A stretch of 64,000 bases of DNA from Blepharisma stoltei ATCC 30299 (lineage: Eukaryota; Protista; Ciliophora): positions 62,001-126,000 of the forward strand of contig CBFDEM010000003.1 in assembly GCA_965603825.1 (NCBI GenBank). Direction: 5' to 3'. How positions within the stretch are numbered: the first letter of the stretch is position 1; each line of letters begins with the position of its first letter. Under the pieces are notes generated by a model. That model was not told the DNA's origin and made no database searches. It saw only the letters and a program-made list of their open reading frames with translations. Below, in pieces: positions 5,203-61,102 of this stretch. The position numbers and the translations under genes were made by a program.

Positions 5203-8200
5203 ATGAAAATCATTTTCTTTTTTCTCTTTCTTTTACATTTGCCTCAATGTTTAGCTTTTATGAATCAAGTCAACAAATTTTCAGAGATTTCTCATTGAAG
5301 AATTCTCAACCCAAGCCAAGTTTCAAAAACTGCCGAATACAAAAGTGGAGTGACCTACCCAAGGCTTCTCCAGCAGAACTCTTGCTTATCATACGACTCA
5401 TCAGGCAGCTGCATCGAATGTTATGAAGAAATAGCTATTCAAGCCAATATTACACGCTCAAAATCTTATAACAGCACAAATACTCAGTGTAATAGTTGTA
5501 ATAACGAGATAAATTCAAACGTGACCATTTCCTCTTCTTGCAGCCAATGCAATGAACAAATCAGCGTAAAAGGGACGATTCCTAGAAAACAAAATACAAC
5601 ATGCTGCTATAAGGATTATAATAATGACGCCACACTAAATTTTACAATAAATTCATCATGCAATCAATGTGAAAACAATTCAACAATAAATGGAATTTGC
5701 TGTTATGGACAGTTTTATAATAATAGAACAGGAAATTGTGAATCATGCCCAAACGAGTGTCCAAATTGCAACAGTACGACTGGAGAATGCATTAAAAATT
5801 CCACAATTCTATGTGGTGATTTATGTGATGACTGCAATGAATCATTAGGACTTTGTCAATCATGCATAGATGATTCTAAGATGCATTCTTCTGGAAGCAA
5901 CTGCGTGTGCAATGATGGGTATTTTCTTGATAACACAGTTTGCAAAGGATGTGGAAATAATTGCAGTGTTTGTGATATAGGCGGAAAAAACACGATGTGT
6001 TGTGATGGGAAATTTTATAATAAAACTTCTGAAGCTTGTGAGTCGTGCCCAAATAGTTGCTTGAGCTGCAAAGAGCAATTGGCAATTAGTGGAGAAATCA
6101 AAATAAAAAATCCTGTGTGCTGTGCTAATGGGTTTTATTTAAATTCATCTTCTGTATGCGATAAGTGTCCAAATAACTGTATGTTATGCGATAAAACAAC
6201 AGGAGTGTGCCAAGATTGTAAAGAGGACTTACGTATAAGTGGGACAATTCCTATTAAAAACTCTACATGTTGCAGTGATGGGAGTTACCTAAAGGGGTCT
6301 TTTTGTGAGCCATGCCCAAACAATTGTAGAAACTGTAATAAAACAACTGGAGAATGCATTGAACTTAAATGTGGCAGTTTATGCGCTGACTGTGATAAAG
6401 AACTAGGACTTTGTAGACAGTGTATTGATGAGATCAAAATGCAAGTTTTTGGAAACAATTGCATTTGCGGTGAAGGATATTCTCTAAGTGATATCATCTG
6501 TCAAGGATGTGGAAATAATTGTAGTCTTTGCGATATAAATGGAAAAAACATGACATGCTGTGATGGAAAATTTTATAATAAAACCTCTGCTGCTTGTGAG
6601 TCATGTCCTAATAGTTGCTTGAGCTGCAATATAACAGGAACATGCAGTAATTGTGACGAAGTATTGACAGTTAGTGGAGAAATCCAAATCAAAAACCCTA
6701 TGTGCTGTGCTGATGGATTTTATTTAAATTCATCTTCTGTATGCGATAAATGTCCAAATAACTGTATATTATGCGATAAAACAACAGGAGTGTGTCAAGA
6801 CTGTGAAGATGACTTAAGTATAATTGGGACAATTTCTATTAAAAACTCTACATGTTGTAGTGATGGGAATTATCTAAATGGGTCTTTTTGTGAGCCATGC
6901 CCTAACAATTGTAAAAATTGTAATAAAACAACTGGAGAATGTATTGAAAATAAATGTGGGAGTTTATGCACTGACTGCGATAAAGATCAAGGACTTTGTA
7001 GACGATGCATTGGTGAGATCAAAATGCAAGTTTTTGGAAACAATTGTATTTGCAGTGAAGGGTATTTTCTAAATGATGCCATCTGTCAAGGATGTGGAAA
7101 TAATTGTAGTCTTTGCGATATAAATGGAAAAAACATGACATGCTGTGATGGAAAATTTTATAATAAAACCTCTAATGCCTGTGAGTCGTGTCCTAATAAT
7201 TGCTTGAGCTGCAATATAACAGGAACATGCAGTAATTGTGACGAAGTATTGACGGTTAGTGGAGAAATCCAAATCAAAAACCCTATGTGCTGTGCTGATG
7301 GATTTTATTTAAATTCATCTTCTGTATGCGATAAATGTCCAAATAACTGTATATTATGCGATAAAACAACAGGAGTGTGTCAAGACTGTGAAGATGACTT
7401 AAGTATAATTGGGGCAATTTCTATTAAAAACTCTACATGTTGTAGTGATGGGAATTATCTAAATGGGTCTTTTTGTGAGCCATGCCCTAACAATTGTAAA
7501 AATTGTAATAAAACAACTGGAGAATGTATTGAAAATAAATGTGGGAGTTTATGCACTGACTGCGATAAAGAATTAGGGCTTTGTAGACGATGCATTGATG
7601 AGATCAAAATGCAAGTTTTTGGAAACAATTGTATTTGCAGTGAAGGGTATTTTCTAAATGATGCCATCTGTCAAGGATGTGGAAATAATTGTAGTCTTTG
7701 CGATATAAATGGAAAAAACACGACATGCTGTGATGGAAAATTTTATAATAAAACCTCTGCTGCTTGTGAGTCGTGTCCTAATAGTTGCTTGAGCTGCAAT
7801 ATAACAGGAACATGCAGTAATTGTGACGAAGTATTGACAGTTAGTGGAGAAATCCAAATCAAAAACCCTATGTGCTGTGCTGATGGATTTTATTTAAATT
7901 CATCTTCTGTATGCGATAAATGTCCAAATAACTGTATATTATGCGATAAAACAACAGGAGTGTGTCAAGACTGTGAAGATGACTTAAGTATAATTGGGAC
8001 AATTTCTATTAAAAATTCTGCATGTTGCAGTGATGGGAATTATCTAAATGGGTCTTCTTGTGAGCCATGCCCTAACAATTGTAAAAATTGTAATAAAACA
8101 ACTGGAGAATGTATTGAAAATAAATGTGGGAGTTTATGCGCTGACTGCGATAAAGAACTAGAGCTTTGTAGACGATGCATTGATGAAATCAAAATGCAAG

Positions 8201-21637: not shown

Positions 21638-22216
21638 TTATTTCCTAGCTTTTTTCCCTAGTTTCTTTTTGTTAGAAGCGTGCGAATGATTCATTATTTC
21701 AAGCTCATCATTCAAATATGATAACTGTAAAGCATTAGCCATAAGCCCGGTTTTCAATAATTGGACTTCTTGTGATTTTAGCATCCTTTCTGTCTCATTC
21801 AGCCTGTCAACTTCACTTCTCCTTGATCTTTTTGATGATAATTTCATAGAATCTCCAAACTGAAGGCTATCAATTGGTTCTGATCTTATTGTGTGGGATT
21901 TTCATAAATCGTTGAGCTGGCCTAAAGGACTTTCAGTATTTTCTCTTTTTTCTGCTGTTTTATGTGAATATTTAAGCCTCTCTTTTAGCTCTAAAATCGT
22001 AGCTTCTAGAGCTTCTATTGTTTTTATCAAATTTCTATTTTGATCTTCAAGCTCATTTCTTTGCCTTTCTCATTGTAGCATAATAAATTCCTTTTCGTTT
22101 TTATGAGTGATTTCTTGGGAATCTAGCATATTTTGTAAGACATCGATTTCTTTCTTTAAAACAGAATTTTCTTCTTCATATAATTTTACAATTTCTCTTA
22201 GCTCAGCTTCTGTCAT
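21638..22216 (-). CDS. Hypothetical coiled-coil protein; 192 aa
   Basis: ATG at 22216 is in frame with ORF 21638-21847 through two TGA=Trp; E/K/L-rich heptads. Confidence 0.7.
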
Positions 22217-49439: not shown

Positions 49440-50060
49440 ATGGGTAAAATGATAGGCATATACAGACTATTGTCTGTCAAATACGAAAAGCAAATAACCG
49501 TCACGCGTCAGCAACTTATATCAAGGATTTCTGTTATGAATCCTCTCTACTCTTTAATGAGTAATTTTCATTTGTTCGAGTTGTTGAGCGCTGCATCAAA
49601 CTTCTTCCACTTAACCTGCATAGAAATATGCGAGATGGCTATCCTATTGCAGAGGTTTAAAAATTTCTTTTCGTTCACAAACGAAGAAATTATTTATATT
49701 ATAGCTTATATTACAAAGGCAAATTTCAATGCAAAGATTGAAATTTATGAAGAAAAGTTAGTAAAACGCTTTCCAGATTTTCTAATAAAATACGGAAACT
49801 TTTTAAATGCAAATTTTGCAGCTCAAAACATCAGCACTACCGATATTTTCAACATGTATAAAGAGCTTATGGAAGGAATTGTAACGCCTCAAAGAGAAAT
49901 TGATGAGTTAAATGAAAATTTAAATTCTATTATGAGGACTGGTTATAAAAGGAAGGCATCAAAGTTAGACATGAAGGATGAGATAGCTGTAAACTTGCAC
50001 TTAAAAAAGATAAAGAAGGATTTCTTCGGGGAAGAAAACTTAGATGATTTGGAGGTCTAA
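49440..50060 (+). CDS. Hypothetical helical protein, possibly cyclin-like fold
   Basis: 206-aa ORF; EMAILLQRF...IIAYITK only weakly recalls a cyclin box. Confidence 0.55.
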   Translation: MGKMIGIYRLLSVKYEKQITVTRQQLISRISVMNPLYSLMSNFHLFELLSAASNFFHLTCIEICEMAILLQRFKNFFSFTNEEIIYIIAYITKANFNAKIEIYEEKLVKRFPDFLIKYGNFLNANFAAQNISTTDIFNMYKELMEGIVTPQREIDELNENLNSIMRTGYKRKASKLDMKDEIAVNLHLKKIKKDFFGEENLDDLEV

Positions 50061-50638: not shown

Positions 50639-51064
50639 ATGAAAATTATTTTAGGTTTATTGATACTTTTGATTTCTTCAAATGCAAGTGAACAGTACTC
50701 ACATGATGAAAATGGGAACAGAATTTACCTTGAAATATCATCACAAACAAGAGGAGATTTTACAAAGTTAAAAAATTCAGAAAAAAATACACCCACTTTT
50801 ACCCAGCTAAGTAACGATGGATCTGGGGAAGATGATGATGGTATGGAAGACGATACGAAAGTTATAACCGTATTTTTACTTAATATACTTGCATGTGTTT
50901 TATGCTGTGGATTCCTTCAGCTAGTACTAATGCTGAGCAAAAGAATGAATAGTGAACTAAGTGATATGAGAAAAAATTATAAACAATATCAAGGTTTCCT
51001 AAGATTTAAAGAATTTCGGAGAGCTTGGGCAAAAGAAAATGAAGGAGAGAGCTCTGATAATTAA
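50639..51064 (+). CDS. Small single-pass type I membrane protein
   Basis: Signal peptide, acidic ectodomain, TM segment with Cys cluster (VITVFLLNILACVLCCGFLQLVLML), basic tail. Confidence 0.7.
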   Translation: MKIILGLLILLISSNASEQYSHDENGNRIYLEISSQTRGDFTKLKNSEKNTPTFTQLSNDGSGEDDDGMEDDTKVITVFLLNILACVLCCGFLQLVLMLSKRMNSELSDMRKNYKQYQGFLRFKEFRRAWAKENEGESSDN

Positions 51065-51480
51065 ATATTTCCTTTTAATATAATATAAACTTATTTTTTA
51101 TAAAAATTTGTATTTAGATACGGTCTTTTAAATTTTCTTAAACTTATTTAATTTTTATTTATTAGTCCACTTGCGGGCATTGATTTTTTCTATATTAATA
51201 TATATATTGATCTAAATCATATTCTTTCTTATTTGCTTTTTCCTTGATTTTTTTATAATAATTGAAACTATTTCATCTATAAGAGATCATATGGTAGCAG
51301 GTCCTTATAATATTCAGTTTATATTATTTTAATTTTCAAGTATTTTTTATCCATATTCAATTGCAATATCTGCTGAAACTTACTACTATTGCTAAATATA
51401 ATATTAAAAGATTAAAGGTAACGAAATTTGTATAATGAAAGCTTTCTTAATCATCTAAGCCTCTATATACATTTTGAGCA

Positions 51481-51552
51481 TCAGAAGTAGCACAATGGTT
51501 GTGCGTCAGACCTGCTCAGCTGAAGATCCAAGTTCAATTCTTGGCCTCTGAC
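51481..51552 (+). tRNA. tRNA-like Pol III gene with non-canonical 18-nt anticodon arm (identity undetermined; GCT if A51510 is bulged)
   Basis: Acceptor stem TCAGAAG/CCTCTGA (one A-C mismatch); T8 A9; D stem GCAC/GTGC with loop AATGGTT; anticodon stem TCAG/CTGA around ACCTGCTCAG; variable loop AGAT; T stem CCAAG/CTTGG with loop TTCAATT; A and B boxes intact; T5 tract at 51555-51559. Confidence 0.8.
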
Positions 51553-51554
51553 CC

Positions 51555-51559
51555 TTTTT
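51555..51559 (+). terminator. Pol III terminator (T5)
   Basis: TTTTT begins 3 nt after the discriminator base of the tRNA-like gene. Confidence 0.6.
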
Positions 51560-51628
51560 AGAATGCCTTCACATTTTTCTATCTCTGTCATCATAAATCA
51601 ATCAATTCTATCCTTTTTGTAAAAATAA

Positions 51629-53707
51629 ATGTTGGGAGACAGCTTTATTCTATTGCAACTCTTTTTATTGGCCAGCTTGTTACTCTCACTGATATTTTTT
51701 TTCTTTTATATGCTCTCATATATAGTTACAGGGCCTGGATCATTCACTCTTTTTATTATTCTCATATGCTATCTACTTCACAGTATAATTGAAGGTCTAG
51801 TATTCCCAGGCTCCATAACTTTATGTCGAAGAGCTTCTGAAATCGGCATTTCTAAGCGATTTGCATCAGAGCTTAAAACAACTATCAATGATTTAGAAGC
51901 AATTTTAGTTAATTTACAAAAAGTTAAAGAAAGCTATGAAGATCAACAATTAAAACATTTTAATTTGAGTTTTTCCAAAAAAAGCTTTTTATCAGTGATG
52001 AAACACCTTAATGAGCTTCAAAAACAAGGACTAATTTCTCCTAATCAAGACCGTCTCCTAACTTTATTAGTTCAGCTTGAAGAGTGCTTAAAAGGAATAA
52101 AAATTGATGCAGGGAAAAATGTGGAAAGCTTATGGGATTTATTAGATAAAATTCACAAAAAGAAAATCCAGACAAGCTTAGAGAGTTTACAAATCCCTTT
52201 GAAGCTATGTAAAGAACTTAATACATTTATATATCAGTCTTATGGAAAAACCAACTGTTTGCAAAAAGCAAAAAGATGGATGACAGACCCTTTGCTAGGG
52301 AATCTGAATTATATGAGAGTAATTTTATCGAGCCAACTCAATGGAGAACAAATATGGATTCAAGGTCATGATGGAATGCGAATTGATTGGTAATTTTTAT
52401 TAAGCATGCTTTTTCCAAGCCATTGAAACCCAAATGGGCCTACAATGCTTTTCTGTAATCCAAATGTCGGTTTTTACGAATTAATGCATTTTCAGACAGA
52501 ATGGCTTGAATTTTACCTTGCATTAGGTATCAATGTATTCGCGTGGAATTACAGAGGCTACGGACGATCTCAAGGCCGCTCAGAAATTCCAAACTTTAAA
52601 AAAGATGGAGAAATGATCGTCAACTATTTAAGAAACACCCGACAAGTCAACAAATTAGGAGTCCATGGGTTATCACTAGGTGGCTGTGTAGCTACTCATT
52701 TAGCAAGAAACTGCGATTTAGACTTTTTATTTGCGGACAGAACATTCTCGACCTTAGGAGATGCCACCAGATATAATTTCGGACAATTCGCATTTTATCC
52801 TTTTCAAATTCTTGGGCCGGTAGACACAGATTCAGCTGGAGATTATATTTCTTCACATTGTTATAAAGTCCTTGCAGCTGATCCTAGAGATGATATGATT
52901 GATGATTTGGCTTCTTTAAAATCAGGAATTGCTATACAATTATTTACGAAACAAAGCGCAATTCCTTATATTGACCCTGCTTTATTTGAGAAAAAATCAT
53001 TTATTTTGAACATTGAGGATCTAGATCGAGCAGTTGAAGTATTGAAAAGATTAGGAAACTTAATAAAAGGCATGATAAGAGCTATGCAAAGTCAACCAAA
53101 CTCAGAAGCAACCCCTGAAAGCGCAATAAAAGCGATTAAAAAACAAAAGGTTTATAAATGTGGAAATGAAAGCCTTGATGACTATGAAAAAATTGCTGAA
53201 ATAGTTGTTGACGTCCATAATGTTTTAGCTCATTTAGATGCTGGAGGCAAATCTTTGAGTATAATTTTAAGCTCAAAATACATAAGGCTCAATTTTATTG
53301 CGTGGCTGCTTGTAATTGATATATGAGGAAGTGATTGTAATGAATATACTGAAAATCTGGATTTAGGTAAAGTAAAGTCGCTGGAGCTTATGAAATATTG
53401 TATTGAATGCTTAAAAAATCTAATTTCACAGAATAAAATCTGCCCATGTACGCTCATGCAGGCTATTATTGCTGACCTCCATATTTTGACTGACACTTTA
53501 GCAAAAATACACAACAAACTAGAAGAAGGCGAAAACAGCACAGAAGCCAACGAGTCCTTAAGCAGCTTCGACAGCTTCAAAGAAAGCATCGACTACTCCT
53601 CCGCTGGATATCTAATTCCATTAAAAAATGGGCATAATGGAATCCTTTCCTCTATAGAAAGACATATTTACGAGAGACACTTAGCAAGAGCCCATTTTAT
53701 TAGTTAA
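51629..53707 (+). CDS. Membrane-anchored alpha/beta hydrolase (ABHD16/ABHD13-like), paralog B; 687 aa; intron 52390-52404
   Basis: CNPNVGFYE, WNYRGYG, HGLSLGG, ADRTFS, C-terminal GHNG; splicing restores IDC as in paralog A. Confidence 0.88.
52390..52404 (+). other. 15-nt intron GTAATTTTTATTAAG
   Basis: Removal gives IDCML, matching IDCLW in the intronless paralog. Confidence 0.9.
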
Positions 53708-55238
53708 CTCTTGTATTCACATCTTCCTCTAATTTCGCATCTAAATTCTCGTCTTTGTTTTGGTTTTCCATTATTATTGCTAAAAGTTCAAGAGAGGTAT
53801 GTAGATAAGTTTTTTCTTTTCCATTGATTTCGTGCTTTGTTATGAGATTTTTGATGGAGTCAAAAAGAAATGAAGCTCCTTCGGTCTCAATTTTTATGAT
53901 TTCTTGGATTTTTTCTTTGTAGTCGTTGAGGTCATATTTTGGAAGCAAACTTTTTACCTCAGAAATTTCGGATTTAAGGGATTTAAATAGGTAGAGATAT
54001 CCACAATAATTAAGGATATTTTCTACTAGGGTTTTTATATTTCCTTGAGATTCCTCAACTTTTTCTTTTAAAATTTTGGTCAAAATCCCGATTTCTAAAA
54101 ATCTGCAAATACACTGTGTAATTTTCCTATATAATTTAGCACTGATATCTTTTAATGTAAGCTTTATAGGGATAAAAATATGCTGAGTGGCGTCTTGTAT
54201 TTTTCGATAAAATTTGCTTAAATTCCTTGAAAAATCCTGAGCATTAAAATTCAAATGGCTGTTTATTTCTTCAATTTTAAGGTCGATTATATTATTTGTC
54301 AACAATTTCACAATATTTTTTGGGACAAAACCATTGTTTCCTTCAATATTTAAGCATCTGTATCATTGATGATCTGTGGTTCCGCCTCTTATTTCAATAG
54401 CCTCCCCTGCTTTTAGATTAATTTCATCTGGAAACACAGAAGAAAAGTCAAATAAAGCTTCAGCATTTGGTACAAAAAAATATTTTCTGTTAAATTTAAA
54501 TAAATTTGGTCTCGTAATATGTCTTTTTTCTAGCGAAATTTGAGAAAAACCTATAACTTTTGGATATGTGTCCCTATCTTCAGTTATCTCAATATATTTT
54601 TCTGTGTTTTCTTTCAGCCCTTCCAGATCTTCGTGCAAATTATCAGAAAAATTTTCAATGCACCCTATCATTTCTGCAATTGGTCCTAACAATTCGTCTT
54701 GTGTTGACTCTTTTGCATCATTGCTGGCTTTTTCAAAATCTTTATCTTTATTGATAAAATTATTCCAAACGCCTCCTTTAATTTCTTCCATTTCTTGGAT
54801 TCTATGGTCTTGTGTCAATTTAGACTGCTCTACAAGAATTTTTTCATAAAGCTGCTTAAAATGCTCTCTTTCGTCCCAGGCAGCTTTTGCTCTTTGTGCC
54901 TTGACGTTTCATTCTTGGACTCTTATGGCTAAATCTTCGAGTTTTGTCGTCAGTCTTAAACTTTCTCATGGGTCTCTTTTTAGGAATTTTGATGAAAAAT
55001 CTATCATAAAATTAGGAAGTGATATTTCTTTCGATAATCCTTGTAAGGCAATTGATGTGTCGTAAAGAGAATTAATAAACTCTGATTAAACTGTACTAGT
55101 TACTGCTTGCGAAAGTTTCATGATTTCTACAGCTACAGATTGAGAACTTGATGAGCAATTTACAATTCAATTGGTAAGCTGCTCTTCAGTTTCTTTTTCT
55201 GGGCTGGAGTCTGGAGACTCTGAAACTTCATCTTGCAT
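53700..55238 (-). CDS. SH3-domain protein flanked by helical (BAR-like) regions; 507 aa; intron 55082-55096
   Basis: SH3: AEALFDF...EINLKAGEAI...W(TGA 54363)Y...GFVPKNIV; ATG 55238 is in frame after a 15-nt intron. Confidence 0.75.
55082..55096 (-). other. 15-nt intron GTACAGTTTAATCAG
   Basis: Fits the consensus on the minus strand; removes an in-frame TAA. Confidence 0.75.
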
Positions 55239-55273
55239 ATTTTATCAAATTATTGAAGTAATCATTTCTTGAA

Positions 55274-55912
55274 ATGGAGGAAGAGCTTCTCTTTAGAGTT
55301 ATCATTGTCGGTGATAGTGGGGTGGGGAAATCTTGCTTATTACTAAGGTTTAGCGAAAATACATTCAATGAGCAGCATACTGTTACTATTGGTGTTGAAT
55401 TTGGCACAAAACTGGTGAAAATAAATAATCAACAAGTGAAACTCCAAATATGAGACACTGCTGGCCAAGAAAGTTTTAGGAGTATCACAAGAAGCTTTTA
55501 CCGACGAGCTGATGGAGTTTTGCTCGTCTATGATGTGAATTCCAAAGAAAGCTTTGAAGGGCTGAGCTATTGGCTTGGAGAAATTCGGCAACACGCAACA
55601 AGTGACATTGTTATATTTCTAGTAGGAAACCAAGTAGACCTCACAGAGTCGGAAAATTCAAGAGAAGTCTCACAAGATGATGCAAATGCTTATAAAAATT
55701 TCCATAATTTGTGTGGATTTAAAGAAACTTCAGCGCTGAGTGGGTTTAATGTGAATGAAACTTTTCATGAGTTCACCAATATTCTCTATGAGAGATGAAA
55801 CGAAAAAGTTGATAAAGACCCGATGGAGGTGCCTAGCCTTGACCTTAAGACTAAACCATTAACAAATAAGAAAAATTGCTGCTATTTTTGTAATATAAAA
55901 AAGATATTATAA
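55274..55912 (+). CDS. Rab GTPase (Rab2-like); 212 aa
   Basis: GDSGVGKS, TIGVEFG, QIW(TGA 55451)DTAGQESFRSITRSFYR, GNQVD, ETSA; tail KKNCCYFCNIKKIL. Confidence 0.92.
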
Positions 55913-56082
55913 TCTCATTTATATCAATAGTATGATAATAAAGCATAGAAAAGCAATGAATTTTTAACAATTTTAAGGACTTTTTTATTTTTAGGAAATA
56001 TATTAGACAATTTAACTGATTTTTCGTATGAAATTATTTTCATCAAGATTTATTGTATACATCCTTATATAATTAAATTAAA

Positions 56083-57717
56083 ATGACAACTCAAATCAAA
56101 GAACTTTTCCTTTCCAAAAACTTCCAAATTCTTGCATTAACCCAATACTGCAATTTATTATTTGAATACTCCCCTGGCTCAATCCCTTTATTAAGTGATC
56201 AAAAGCTTAAATTATTCCCAACCTGTGTGACATTTACAGGAACTAAAAGATTTCAATTTCAAACTTTATGAATGAATAGCAACATCGTAATACCTATTTA
56301 GGCCTCAGTAATCCACAATAAATACGTGATTTGGGTATTTATATGTAAAAACGAATACTCTGAGGCAATAGAAAATAATCGTTTATTTTTGCTTTCTTTA
56401 TTTGTGAAATTTCTAAGCATAAGACCTCATTATCTTCAAAAAATATTAAATGCTGAAAAAGTGAAATCGTCAAGGCAGCATAGTGATTTTTTGCTGCAAG
56501 ATGTAACAACTGATCGACCTCCAAGCTATACTGAAAGTTTTTCTTCATATAAAACATTTTTAGAAGAAGAAGCAGAAAATTGGCTTATTGAATATTTGGT
56601 AGAGATGAATAATTTCGAAGGATTTGTGATGGACATGAAAGGGTATCTCCTTTATGGCACAGTGCCAGGAGAAGAAGATTTAAAACTCCAAATTCTTGGC
56701 TACGGAAAAAAGCTTAACGCTGAGTATAAAAGTGATTTTTCAGTAAGAAAATAATTAGAGAATGCTAAATTAGAAATTAATTTAGTAAACCACAAGCTTT
56801 CTATGATAATAGGCCTATCTCCAGTGCTAAAAGGGCTTATTATAGCTTCCTACGAGTCCACAAGCTACTCAGACTCTAGCTTTAGAACCGTCCACAACTT
56901 AAATTTAATCTGAAGTACCCTTCAATTAGGCTCTGAATTTCCTCATCCAGCCCAAACTCCTCATCACCTATATAATTTTGTCCTGCATCTTTCTAACGCT
57001 TTAGAAAAATGGCTATATCATACTGTATGTGAAGACCAAGAATTTCGATATAAATACTCTACAATGATTATCCCTTTTTCCCATTCTAATAAAGAACTAG
57101 TCCCAGAACTCGCTACAAAAATAGCATTTACGAATGAAGAGCCTGAGTCTGAAGACGAAACTGACATAAAGCCTGACATCAGTGCTATTGAAAGAATAAA
57201 TGACCCCGATGCAGAGAAATCTGACCTTTTGCAGATGTCCCAAGAATTTTCAACTTTTATTAATAAAGCAGATACTATAGATTTAGATGGCCTAATGCCT
57301 AAAGTTTCACTAGAAAATACCCAAGACCAGCTATTTGTGTTTAATAACTATATAGAAGATGAAAATAAAGAATCTATCTCAGACGAGGAAACTGACAAAG
57401 TTATGCTTCCACCTATAGATGAAAGGTCCACAATTTTTAAAAGCAAGCAGAAAGTAGTCAGTCGTAGGGCCTCTGAGTCAGTTCTTCAACAAAGCCCTTT
57501 TGCTTTGTTTCACCGTTTGTCTTTGCAGGAAAGCTTGGCAAATAGAGATAGGTACAATGTGTCGAAATCGACTCAACATTTTGGACGGTCTGATTTATTG
57601 AATAGAGAAGAATTGGTTGACCTTGGGGTAGATATTTTTAATGATGCGTATGAGATGATTGAAAATTATGCTGAGTTGAACCATAGACCAAGAAGAGAGT
57701 CCAAAGAGAACCAATAA
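56083..57717 (+). CDS. Hypothetical protein (about 533 aa); intron 56287-56301 and an ambiguous intron at 56743-56758/56760
   Basis: ORFs 56083, 56326 and 57064 share one frame; the only TAA/TAG interruptions fall inside GTA...AG tiny-intron candidates. Confidence 0.6.
56287..56301 (+). other. 15-nt intron GTAATACCTATTTAG
   Basis: Fits the consensus; removes an in-frame TAG. Confidence 0.8.
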
Positions 57718-57745
57718 GGGATTATTAATTTTACTTGATTTTAAA

Positions 57746-58078
57746 TTACTTAGAAGTAGGCTTTTCTGCTTTCGTTTTCTCAAATTCTTGATAAAGAGCA
57801 TCAAAATTTGAGGTACGAGACAGCTTGATAATTACCTTGTAAACTCTTTTAGGTCTCCCTTCAAAATCTTTTTCATCAAGACTGAGTGTTTCAAAGCGTT
57901 CCAACGTTGCATATCCCAAAGCAATCAAGCTGTCAGCAGCTCTCACAGCGTTGCTCACTGATTCTCCAATAGCATGAAATGCGACTTCTGGGTTTTTCTT
58001 TAAAGCTTCTTTTCCTTCATAAATGTATCTGCTATGCTTTGGGCGAGAGCTGACTTTCAAAACTCCGTCAGATTCCAT
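57746..58078 (-). CDS. Alba-domain nucleic-acid-binding protein
   Basis: LKVSS..YI....L....EVAFHAIGESVSNAVRAADSL...KVIIKLSRTSNFD, the pattern of eukaryotic Alba proteins. Confidence 0.8.
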   Translation of the reverse strand: MESDGVLKVSSRPKHSRYIYEGKEALKKNPEVAFHAIGESVSNAVRAADSLIALGYATLERFETLSLDEKDFEGRPKRVYKVIIKLSRTSNFDALYQEFEKTKAEKPTSK

Positions 58079-58102
58079 TTCTTATGGTAATTATTATGAC
58101 TA

Positions 58103-58909
58103 TTAATAGCATTTATATTTCTCAGCATTTCTTCTACGGCTACAAAAAATATCCCTAGGAAATTTTGATTTTTTTGGCATCCAATTTTCGCCTGGTTTAA
58201 ATGTGACGAGTTTTGATGAGTCTATGTTACAGTTTTCATTAGGAACTTGAGGCTTCTCAAAGCAAGGTGTGCAAGCTTGGCGGCGATTTATTAAAGGGGG
58301 CATGTTTAGGTCATTGTTAATTTGGCTTAATGGTCTAGCAAACACAGGCTTATTTTGAAGCTTGGATAAGATGCCTTCTTGGCTTTCAAGCTTTGCCTTA
58401 AGCTCTTGCTGCTGATTTAAAAGGTGTCCAAAAACGTAGTTCAGTGAAGTTATATTGGAAATATAAGGGATTTTTACGTCCATATCAAGACTTCGGGAAG
58501 CCCGTTTTCTTTTTGTTTTCCTGAGACTGAATAATTGCTCATTTTTTGAGGCAATCTCAAAATTATAACGATAGCCGCTAGGAGTTATACTTTCTTGGCT
58601 TCATACATTTCTTTTGACGTTAGAGTTTTCTAACGACTCATCGATAGTTTTATTAATTGGTGTTTCAAATGAGTGCAAAATCTCATCAGGTGTATAAGTG
58701 AGGTCTGAAGGATTATTTAGTGAGAGTCGCCTTTGGTGACTTTTGTAGGAGGGTTTGTAACTGATTTTTAAGTGATGGCTTCCCTTAGATTGAAAAGTTT
58801 GGTTTACATGGGAATATTGGTCATCTGGCAACCGGTTTTCTGAGAATGAGCAGAGCTTGGCAGGCGTTTGAGGAGTTGGCTTGGTAAACCAAGAATCCTT
58901 GTTTAACAT
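58103..58909 (-). CDS. Hypothetical protein; 268 aa
   Basis: Two ORFs in one frame joined by TGA at 58601. Confidence 0.65.
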
Positions 58910-59212
58910 TTTTCTTAAAAATTGACTTTATAAAATTTAAAATATCGATAAATGGAATTATAGAAGAGATAAAATAACGAAATTTAATATGAAAATAAAT
59001 AATTAAAAATTATAAAATAAGATTTTATTGAAGATTTTACTTAATAATAACTAATTTATGGATCGTTAATATTTTTCTCTAAATGATAATTTTAAGGTAT
59101 ATTTATTTAGAAATAGAAACTTATTTAATCAGCTAAAATCATGGCTCAATATAATAGCTTATTAAATTATTAACTTTTACTTTTAGTTATGGCTTATTTA
59201 ATATAAGCAGTT

Positions 59213-60220
59213 ATGAGCAAAGATTATTATTCCATACTAAAGCTGGATCACAAAGCTACAGATGCAGATATATGTAAAGCATATCGCCATTTAGCTATTT
59301 CATGGCATCCAACAAACCATCCAAAAGACTACGTCCCAGCTTTAAACCGCTTTCATCTCCTTGCAGAAGCATATGAAGTTTTAAGTGACCCTGTAAAAAG
59401 AAGCATATATGATCAGTCCGGAGAATTTGGCTTAAAAGAAGGCATCAATGAAGGGAATGGGAGCTTTTCAGGCGGCTATTGCTATACTGGAAATGCATAT
59501 AAAATTTTTGAAAACTTTTTTGGGACTATTAATCCTCTTTTTGAAGCATATGGGGAAAATACAAATATTTTGAACTTATGCAATATCAGTCTTAAAGAAG
59601 ATCAGACTTCTGAAGAGCCACCTAAAGACCTTATCGTCGAAATTCCCTGCACCTTAACTGAATTATACCTAGGCTGCCAAAAAAAGATTGACTATGAAAA
59701 ATTGATTCTAGCTGAAGACAGTACTATTAGATCAATAAAGGAATCAAAGACAATAGAAATCAAAAAAGGCTACTCAAAAGACACAAAAATAATATTTTAT
59801 GGAAAAGGAAATGAAGCAGCCATGTTCCCCAGTAGTAATTTAATTTTCCAGATAGTGGAGCTTCCTGACCAAAATTTCAAAAGAATTGGAAATGATTTGG
59901 TTTATTCTGTTCAAATTTCACTGATAAATGCAATATTAGCTGAACCTGTTCATATTGTAAGCTATATATAGACCACTTTGGATAAAAGAATTATTACAGT
60001 TTCGCCTGATGAAGTAATAGGGACTAAAAGCAGAAAATTAATCGAAAATGAAGGAATGCCGATTTTTAAGGAGATTGAGCAAGGGAATGAGCCAAAAAAG
60101 TTCGGATTAGACAAAAGATCAGTAGAAAAGGGAAACTTGATTGTGAAGTTTACAGTAAATTATCCGAAATATATCCCTGAAAGCAGTAAGCAGGCTTTAT
60201 GCAAACTACTTATAAGCTAA
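59213..60220 (+). CDS. Type II DnaJ/Hsp40, DNAJB13 (radial spoke RSP16)-like; 330 aa; intron 59957-59971
   Basis: J domain with HPT instead of HPD, AEAYEVLSDP, IFENFFGTINP, C-terminal substrate domain; splicing restores ITTLD. Confidence 0.85.
59957..59971 (+). other. 15-nt intron GTAAGCTATATATAG
   Basis: Removal restores the conserved DnaJ C-terminal I-x-T-L-D motif. Confidence 0.9.
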
Positions 60221-60268
60221 AAATAAAAATTTGGTCTTCAATTGCTTCATAAATAGCTAGATTTATAA

Positions 60269-61102
60269 ATGGAGAATTCATTAGAAGCATATCAGCCGCT
60301 TCCAGAATTTATAAAAAGAGGGACGATCCGTAAAGTCTATTCATTTGTCCCACTAGACCCTGATGAAGAAGAAGCTCTTTCCAAGTTCCGTGCATTCGCT
60401 ACCAAAAAAAGAATTCAAATTCCTCCAGGGTAACTCTTATTTAGTGTTGATGATCAGCATAGAATGGCATTAAAATTCATGGATTCCGCAAAGAGAAAAC
60501 CCAAAAAAGCCTTCAAAATTATGGAAAAATATCTCAGCTGGCTTAATACGGAGCTGCCAGTGCCAATAAATGAAGTCTCCTCAATGATTGTAAAGATCAT
60601 ATAGGATCAAGGATTTATGTATTTACTGGGAAGAGACAGAAAATTCCACCCTATTATGATTATTAGTGTTAGGAAGATGCTTGACTGCAATATAGACTTA
60701 AATTCATCCTTAAGGCTCAATTATTTTTTACTGACTTGGGCTCTTGAACATATGATGGTCCCTGGGAAGGTAGAAACTTGGACCATCATTATGGATTTAG
60801 CTGACGTTTCAGCTACACAGCTTCCTATTATGCTATTAAAAAACATGCTGAAAAAGTTATCAATAAACTTTATGTGCAGATTGGAAAAATCTTTTATAAT
60901 TAATCTGCCATCCGCATTAAATACAGTTTATAAGATGCTGAAACCTTTTATTGATGAGGACACAAAAAAGAAAATTGTTATACAAAAGGATGGGTGGGAG
61001 CCGCTACTTAGAGAGGATATTAGTGAAGAAGTATTAGAAGAGAAATATGGAGGTGCAAGACCAAACATAACTTCTGGGTTTTTCCCTCCAGCGTTTTATT
61101 AG
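60269..61102 (+). CDS. CRAL-TRIO/Sec14-like lipid-binding protein; 267 aa; introns 60430-60444 and 60590-60604
   Basis: YLLGRDRKFHPI, WTIIMDL, FIIN, KPFIDEDTKKKI, LEEKYGG. Confidence 0.88.
60430..60444 (+). other. 15-nt intron GTAACTCTTATTTAG
   Basis: Fits the consensus; removes an in-frame TAA. Confidence 0.85.
60590..60604 (+). other. 15-nt intron GTAAAGATCATATAG
   Basis: Fits the consensus; removes an in-frame TAG. Confidence 0.85.

Follow-up and report, generated by a model that had tools for sequence, protein, structure and literature searches.

A tRNA-shaped gene of Blepharisma stoltei with a ten-nucleotide loop in its anticodon arm is a diverged copy within a conserved tRNA-like family

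The window, a stretch of 64,000 nucleotides from Blepharisma stoltei ATCC 30299 (contig CBFDEM010000003.1, positions 62,001 to 126,000 of the forward strand), contained at 51481–51552(+) a gene for a small RNA shaped like transfer RNA (tRNA), in which the anticodon arm consisted of a 4-bp stem and a 10-nt loop. The Rfam tRNA model matched this locus end to end with a score well above its gathering score of 29 (E = 2.8e-06 for the window), and this was the sole Rfam match within the 64 kb; the locus is a genuine gene of the type transcribed by RNA polymerase III (Pol III), and it is one diverged copy within a conserved tRNA-like family. The genome searched was the macronuclear (MAC) assembly of strain ATCC30299 (41.46 Mb, 64 contigs). 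Contig numbers follow the alphabetical order of the published contig names (contig 10 is C10, and so on), the window's C3 being published Contig_11. The parts of the gene were as follows.

51481..51552, + strand: tRNA-shaped RNA gene, 72 nt including the discriminator C73 (Rfam tRNA model 44.7 bits; family model R1, described below, 81.4 bits)
51481..51487, + strand: acceptor stem 5' strand UCAGAAG, paired to CCUCUGA at 51545-51551, with A6.C67 the sole mismatch
51490..51504, + strand: D arm, stem GCAC/GUGC and loop AAUGGUU with G18G19, A-box region inside; three of four D-stem pairs covary in the family
51506..51509, + strand: anticodon-arm stem 5' strand UCAG, paired to CUGA at 51520-51523 (4-bp stem)
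51510..51519, + strand: 10-nt loop ACCUGCUCAG, from the Rfam alignment and the family layout
51524..51527, + strand: variable region AGAU, 4 nt, from segmentation of the family sequences
51528..51544, + strand: T arm, stem CCAAG/CUUGG and loop UUCAAUU, B-box region inside; T stem 100% paired, with four covarying pairs
51552, + strand: discriminator C73, which is C in 17/17 family members
51555..51559, + strand: T5 run, a Pol III-type terminator

Several features of this gene had been reported in a sequence-only reading, made from the letters of the window, and most were confirmed. The D and T stems were perfectly paired, the tertiary landmarks were in place (U8, A14, G18G19 and the T-loop UUCAAUU, with the tertiary-core nucleotides canonical), and both the A- and B-box regions and the terminator were intact; the cloverleaf was followed by CC and then T5, and short T runs lay directly 3' of other family members. 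The acceptor mismatch A6.C67 had gone unmentioned in that reading. Acceptor pairs 1–5 were invariant in the family alignment A3 (see below) and pairs 6:67 and 7:66 showed compensatory changes in other members; the window copy was the only family member with a mismatch in the acceptor stem.

The reading had also counted 18 nt rather than 17 in the anticodon arm, and this was upheld. The whole arm between G26 and the variable region was UCAG / ACCUGCUCAG / CUGA, and the Rfam alignment placed 10 nt, instead of 9, between the halves of a four-pair stem. Three of the four stem pairs covaried in the family and the fourth was G-C in 12/12 aligned sequences (A3). Within the loop, position 4 (51513) was the U33-like U, positions 5–7 (51514–51516) formed the triplet GCU, position 6 (51515) was the family-invariant C, and position 8 (51517), the equivalent of position 37, was a C where most members carry a purine. 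The TCA that had been noticed in the loop was indeed displaced, lying two bases off the family register.

Standard tools disagreed about this locus. ARAGORN made no call at 51481-51552 with default settings, and with lowered thresholds it returned an undetermined 'tRNA-?(Ala|Ser)(gc)' with a two-base anticodon. A short intron was rejected as the source of the anomaly: ARAGORN with introns allowed, at default stringency, returned nothing, and an intron of 1 nt is implausible. The published tRNAscan-SE 2.0 table (Swart et al. 2023, bioRxiv 10.1101/2023.10.09.561518) lists the locus as "Contig_11 trna1 113481-113552 Ser GCT 41.1", and the accompanying structure file draws a bulged lower-case 'a', a 7-nt loop and an anticodon at window 51514-51516. 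An undetermined type had been anticipated from both programs; ARAGORN gave one at lowered thresholds, and tRNAscan-SE did not.

Members of the family were gathered by a pattern search for the acceptor stem and from low-scoring entries of the published tRNAscan-SE table. A covariance model (R1) was built from an alignment (A2) of 12 B. stoltei genes and run on the whole genome. This search recovered exactly the 12 genes at 70.6-89 bits, followed by a gap; the next match scored 53.1 bits. Below the gap, a pair of odd genes from contig 15 came first, and the canonical tRNA-Asp(GUC) (51.8 bits) and tRNA-Glu (42-45 bits) followed. All 12 B. stoltei genes were marked by C73 together with the acceptor stem UCAGRRR/YYYCUGA, the window gene sharing acceptor pairs 1-5 and C73 with the others. 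The eleven genes outside the window, each with a 4-bp/10-nt arm and a central C, were located as follows.

C10:276672-276744, + strand: one family member
C12:82837-82909, 83102-83173 and 83423-83495, - strand: three family members
C42:21582-21656 and 21724-21795, - strand: two family members
C42:52403-52475, + strand: one family member
C62:61870-61942, - strand: one family member
C37:127654-127725, + strand: one family member
C38:104467-104538, - strand: one family member
C33:56559-56630, - strand: one family member

With five further members from two other organisms (one each on contigs L146 and L158, three on L147; see below) the family total was 17, and a single layout fitted 17/17: one nucleotide after the D stem, a 4-bp stem, a 10-nt loop, four bases, and a variable region of 4-5 nt. 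Loop position 1 was A in 12/17 and position 4 was U in 12/17, position 6 was C without exception (17/17), and position 8 was A in 11/17 and a purine in 14/17. The central triplets at loop positions 5-7 were consequently all N-C-N (17/17), distributed as GCA (four copies), UCU (three), UCA (two, C42:21582 and C62, both in register), UCC (two), and GCU (the window), ACA, UCG, GCG, CCA and CCG (one copy each). In the published table (10.1101/2023.10.09.561518) the 12 B. stoltei genes had been typed as Ser, Arg (two), Ala (three), Val, Leu, Met (pseudo), Phe and undetermined (two).

The nearest relative of the window gene was the contig-10 gene, at 78-80% identity and with the same non-canonical arm. 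DNA and pattern searches of the genome for a canonical parent returned only this paralogue (80% identity); the canonical Arg-UCU and Ser-GCU genes were rejected as parents, their bodies being unrelated, and none of the canonical tRNAs compared exceeded 65% identity. The suggestion that the gene might be a young pseudogene of a canonical tRNA, with a near-identical parent elsewhere in the genome, was therefore abandoned. A resemblance to tRNA-Trp had been remarked on in the D arm; it extended to the D stem, GCAC/GUGC being that of tRNA-Trp, but not to the gene as a whole, for which identity to tRNA-Trp was 61%, without excess over other canonical tRNAs. A viral or bacterial origin of the family was also considered and rejected: its 3' signature had no exact match in a viral contig collection, and three bacterial matches to the signature fell below the reporting threshold (E 0.01) under the family model. 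A search of the somatic genome for a retroelement primer-binding site (the complement of the 3' end plus CCA) matched only the gene itself.

Two other loci were observed at the margins of the family. The odd contig-15 genes, which are adjacent (C15:410082-410395(-), L104), combined the family T arm and C73 with a normal 5-bp/7-nt anticodon arm; their calls were Glu-UUC at 58.9 bits and Val-CAC at 51.8 bits, the latter gene being one base short in the 3' acceptor strand, and the pair may represent intermediates between tRNA-Glu/Asp and the family. At C45:362305-362359(+) (L144) there was a truncated copy of 55 nt that kept the acceptor strands, D arm and terminator and lacked the anticodon arm and some of the T arm, showing what a truly decayed member looks like.

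Alignment A3 comprised 12 members from three organisms and was assessed against the cloverleaf with the 4-bp arm, 20 pairs in all. Of the cells in these pairs, 96.7% were paired, compared with 28-43% when the 3' partners were slid by one to three columns; changes on both sides were found in 12/20 pairs, including three of the four anticodon-stem pairs, and the window gene had one mismatch in its 20 pairs. The covariation indicates that the family cloverleaf with its 4-bp arm is under selection. The earlier fold with a bulged A51510 is as tRNAscan-SE draws it and is feasible in the window gene's subgroup, but its additional pair (C51511-G51519) was possible in only about seven of the 12 aligned members and never covaried.

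The window gene had a counterpart in the same intergenic position in another species. Two genes beside it served as syntenic anchors.

50639..51064, + strand: upstream open reading frame (ORF), 141 aa; its 3' part, 50808-51070, aligned with L146 2046-2308 at 75% DNA identity
51629..53707, + strand: downstream alpha/beta-hydrolase-like gene, collinear with L146 2813-4112 (orthologue P0001/P0003)

The ORF just downstream of the window gene had one homologue, on L146, a 25-kb Logan contig (run SRR24908292) that was collinear with window 50808-61101 and whose genes were 66-75% identical in DNA. The B. japonicum protein next to the locus was 95% identical, and L146 therefore comes from a considerably more distant relative than B. 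japonicum. When the window was compared with L146 by blastn, intergenic alignment was confined to the tRNA-like gene. A family member of 74.5 bits lay in the slot at L146:2547-2620(-), with about 80% identity to the window copy but on the opposite strand; relative to the window copy there were compensated changes at 12:23, 27:43 and 28:42, while pair 6:67 was G-C on L146 and A.C in the window, and the loop was ACCUUCUAAG (central triplet UCU) as against ACCUGCUCAG. The proposal that covarying homologues might be found in other species was thus borne out, and four covarying helices in the family together with a syntenic copy bearing three compensated stem changes favour the further claim of a selected RNA over random decay. 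Both genes flanking the L146 copy kept their orientation, the tRNA-like gene being inverted, which points to a very small inversion confined to that gene, or to gene replacement.

Loops were similarly preserved elsewhere. The contig-37 member (UCC) and its syntenic counterpart on L158, from the same species as L146, had identical 18-nt arms, while their D arms differed at three positions, one within a compensated pair. A 167-kb metagenome contig from JGI (L147, PR_CR_10_Liq_1_inCRDRAFT_1000001) carried three tandem members at 5963-6245(-), with scores of 79-84 bits and the triplets CCG, UCU and GCA, flanked by a DEAD-box helicase gene and another ORF. The second of these had an 18-nt arm identical to that of the contig-10 gene, with three D-stem pairs and one T-stem pair changed with compensation, and the loop of the third differed by one base from that of contig-12 gene a. 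L147 carried eukaryotic, intron-poor genes in the standard code, with no in-frame UGA in long ORFs, and its GH31 protein was 50% identical to the B. stoltei homologues; judging from the sample name and gene structure, it probably derives from a halophilic heterotrich such as Fabrea. The loops were thus specific to paralogues and nearly fixed between species, a pattern that argues for a sequence-specific working part and not for decay. No family member was found near the gene at a paralogous hydrolase locus of the same relative as L146 (L153), nor near the gene in four metagenome or Logan contigs (L154-L157), a Stentor contig (L159) and a ciliate-like contig (L160).

Comparison of the flanking genes suggested how the window copy arose. 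The gene upstream of the contig-10 copy (C10:275613-276203; L119:451-1032) encodes a protein paralogue, 63% identical, of that encoded at window 49452-50033; PSF3, downstream of the contig-10 copy, had a counterpart on L146 and none detectable in the window. The window and contig-10 regions look to have arisen by one segmental duplication, after which genes were lost reciprocally; L146 resembles the undivided state. A block running from the hydrolase to a Rab gene was present in the window but absent from the 3 kb read on contig 10; in the related species all of these lie on one contig (L146, 7053-7622 included). The T-stem variant CCAAG/CUUGG was restricted to the window, contig-10 and L146 copies. 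Since the UCU loop was common to the contig-10 copy, L146 and L147 copy 2, it is ancestral, and the window copy is the faster-evolving of two UCU-type duplicates in B. stoltei, the contig-10 copy having retained the ancestral arm. Derived changes in the window copy were U34 to G, A37 to C and G6 to A, besides compensated stem changes and the repair of an A.C mismatch at 29:41 to A-U. In the L147 tandem, one duplicate had changed from UCU to CCG. This duplicate and the window copy arose independently and have four loop changes between them, three of which fall on outer triplet positions; this suggests that new members arise by a shift of the triplet with the central C kept, although four events are suggestive only and not significant.

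The nearest described RNAs occur in the same organism. Swart et al. 2023 (10.1101/2023.10.09.561518) found no cytosolic tRNA with a UCA anticodon in Blepharisma except the selenocysteine tRNA, attributed UGA reading to a tRNA-Trp(CCA) whose stem has 4 bp, and saw no C-to-U editing; the text of that preprint does not discuss the window locus, and a full-text literature search produced no further paper on such RNAs. Its supplement describes 'tRNA-like molecules', namely Contig_39-tRNA-like(UCA) and three on Contig_1. Their depth in YAMAT-seq is tRNA-like, and they carry modified bases and non-templated CCA; they are also conserved among other Blepharisma species, and Stentor was reported to lack them. 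The two Contig_1 copies that were read resembled the family in having a 4-bp stem, the loop UUUCUCACUC and C at position 6, with UCA at loop positions 5-7. These RNAs share with the window gene the U1-A72 start, C73 and a standard T arm, and differ from it in their reduced D arm, acceptor sequence and UCA loop centre. They scored 26-29 bits under R1 and were missed by tRNAscan-SE, whereas the window locus was called Ser-GCT. Expression and CCA tailing have been demonstrated for them and are predicted for the window gene.

Other systems were less similar. The canonical tRNA-Ser(GCU) of B. stoltei (four genes, 81.9 bits) has the same triplet as the window gene, but it is 82 nt long with a long variable arm and a G after the acceptor stem, in contrast to the 4-nt variable region, C73 and unrelated body of the window gene. 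Serine identity involves the long variable arm and G73. The poor fit to tRNA-Ser noted previously therefore stands, and as a Ser(GCU) elongator the window gene would attain a 5-bp/7-nt arm only with a bulged A, and would carry C instead of a purine at position 37. The closest canonical bodies were those of tRNA-Asp(GUC) and tRNA-Glu, which start with U1-A72, have a short variable region and a similar T arm, and gave the best canonical scores under R1 (42-52 bits); they depart from the window gene in their G or A at 73, their U35 and their normal 5-bp/7-nt arm. Anticodon loops of 8 nt are found in frameshift suppressors and in yeast mitochondrial tRNA-Thr(UAG), and are linked to unusual decoding. 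Stacking or pairing of A51510 with G51519 would reduce the window loop to 8 nt, including an extra base; however, the extra base of 8-nt loops lies in or next to the anticodon, while that of the window loop lies 5' of the U33-like U, and the family form has 10 unpaired bases. Finally, the tRNA-Trp(CCA) that reads UGA (reported by Kachale et al. 2023) also has four anticodon-stem pairs and belongs to the same genome, but it has an open 27:43 and a normal 7-nt loop, whereas in the window gene 27:43 is paired, the stem is shortened at its loop end, the loop has 10 nt and the triplet is GCU rather than CCA.

It is likely, taking these results together, that the window gene specifies a tRNA-shaped RNA of a conserved family with a selected 4-bp/10-nt arm and a sequence-specific loop, and that it is a diverged duplicate of the UCU type. 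The family, which on this reading belongs to heterotrich ciliates, keeps the top half and core of tRNA (a U1-A72 acceptor start, C73, standard D and T arms); where an ordinary tRNA has its 5-bp/7-nt anticodon arm, its members have a 10-nt loop on a 4-bp stem closed by G-C, the loop presumably being the selected, sequence-specific working end of each paralogue. The window copy has held this fold through compensated stem changes while its triplet became GCU, the next base became C and one A.C mismatch was gained in the acceptor stem. By analogy with the related Blepharisma RNAs of the 2023 preprint, the window RNA is probably transcribed, processed at its ends and CCA-tailed; its relatives suggest transcription by Pol III, processing by RNase P and RNase Z, and CCA addition, and the tRNA core should be able to support normal end processing. 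Ordinary decoding is probably not its role, since every N-G-N codon already has canonical tRNAs. The loop may be recognised through its U-N-C-N-purine motif, with proteins connected with translation and a complementary RNA loop about equally likely as the reader; candidate partners include a synthetase, a modification enzyme, the ribosome and a complementary loop. As U-N-C-N-purine resembles an anticodon loop set within a larger loop, a recogniser of anticodon loops would be the most likely partner.

Several observations weigh against this interpretation. The family is called 'functional' on the ground of its conservation, and the shuffle control on A3, although it matched the observed values in 0/500 cases, ignores relatedness (which the slid control removes). 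Alone in the family, the window copy has a mismatched acceptor stem, and its equivalent of position 37 is a pyrimidine. Its arm has diverged further than in the between-species pairs of the contig-37 and contig-10 types, where the 18-nt arms are unchanged. Its cloverleaf, at -14.0 kcal/mol, was the weakest of the 12 aligned members, and its minimum-energy fold (-18.4 kcal/mol, z = -0.5) was not a cloverleaf, the 3' acceptor strand pairing instead with an internal GUCAGA. This competing helix (51505-51510 GUCAGA with 51547-51552 UCUGAC) was created by the change of C27 to U that made the stem UCAG, and is predicted to lie 4.4 kcal/mol below the cloverleaf. Other family members likewise folded 2-7 kcal/mol below their own cloverleaves, and the thermodynamic result is for that reason weak evidence either way. 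The mismatch, C37, weak cloverleaf and arm changes fit relaxed constraint after duplication.

The same features would be accounted for if the contig-10 copy took over the function after the segmental duplication, leaving the window copy to drift as a decaying duplicate of a UCU-type member. This rival is unlikely but was retained: besides the sole acceptor mismatch, the C37 and the competing fold of a cloverleaf that is the least stable in the alignment, there are two changes relative to the loop common to the contig-10 copy, L146 and L147 copy 2, and the tRNAscan-SE score of 41.1 is the second-lowest of ten non-pseudo family loci (the contig-39 locus having 32.3). The duplication is nevertheless old, as the 63% protein identity of the flanking paralogue attests, and yet all four helices have been kept, with compensated changes at 13:22 and 27:43 and repair of A.C to A-U at 29:41. 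The anticodon arm still has its G-C closing pair, its U33-like U and the invariant C, and neither the box regions nor the T5 terminator has been damaged; the parallel duplicate on L147 (UCU to CCG) has changed at outer triplet positions only, suggesting a route to new members.

Somewhat more doubtful still is a reading in which the family constitutes a second set of adaptor-like RNAs, with one acceptor identity (U1-A72, C73), a panel of N-C-N triplets presented in 10-nt loops, and one charging enzyme. The triplets would be complementary to the middle-G codons UGY, UGA, UGG, CGN, AGA, AGY or GGA, and the enzyme would use the invariant C35-like base together with the acceptor stem. The members might then donate aminoacyl groups outside the ribosome, recode N-G-N codons under certain conditions, or act on other RNAs as loop-loop partners or decoys, and the window copy would represent a recently evolved GCU specificity.

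That the window gene is a working minor decoder is improbable. With A51510 bulged and C51511-G51519 paired, it would have a 5-bp stem and the 7-nt loop CUGCUCA, and would read AGY or be charged according to its anticodon; this is exactly the fold drawn by tRNAscan-SE, the same fold in the closest members yields the textbook loops CU-UCU-AA and CU-CCG-AA, and all of the tertiary-core nucleotides are canonical. Against this, the fifth pair is confined to some seven of 12 aligned members and lacks covariation, the serine features are missing in a genome with four canonical Ser-GCU genes at 81.9 bits, position 37 is C, and the N-G-N codons are all covered by canonical tRNAs. One acceptor stem distributed over ten triplets would also be hard to square with correct charging.

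Blepharisma is a model for stop-codon reassignment, and odd tRNAs there invite explanations in terms of decoding. Enlarged anticodon loops occur in frameshift suppressor tRNAs, and the sequence-only reading had proposed that the RNA decodes UGA non-canonically or is a quadruplet or frameshift tRNA, the loop being enlarged and including UCA in a genome that reads UGA as Trp (10.1101/2023.10.09.561518). The UGA-decoder idea was not supported for the window locus, and this class of explanation is very improbable; the third candidate of that reading, a tRNA mimic that does not decode, may still apply. The UCA is out of register by two bases, the triplet being GCU, and in-register UCA belongs to other members; the family also occurs in the L147 organism, whose long ORFs are without in-frame UGA; the body is as distant from tRNA-Trp as from other canonical tRNAs; and UGA reading in Blepharisma is already ascribed to the 4-bp-stem tRNA-Trp(CCA), editing not having been seen. 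That an ordinary tRNA gene was misassembled or missequenced, a notion for which nothing speaks beyond the anomaly being a single base, is barely credible, given that the 18-nt arm recurs in 16 other genes, including two independent assemblies of other organisms, and that deleting any one base yields no canonical tRNA type present in the genome.

At least twelve weak and assorted tRNAs in the published tRNAscan-SE tables are therefore one conserved family with a single non-standard arm design, which matters for counts of tRNA genes and for codon-anticodon bookkeeping in studies of ciliate genetic codes. Loops that are conserved between species and differ between paralogues around a constant central C would indicate a tRNA scaffold reused for a sequence-specific purpose, and present a testable puzzle. 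Outside the central-C rule, one more tRNA-like gene was observed at C56:376567-376636(-) (L145); its acceptor stem differed, its anticodon arm was irregular, and ARAGORN returned it as undetermined (Thr|Tyr).

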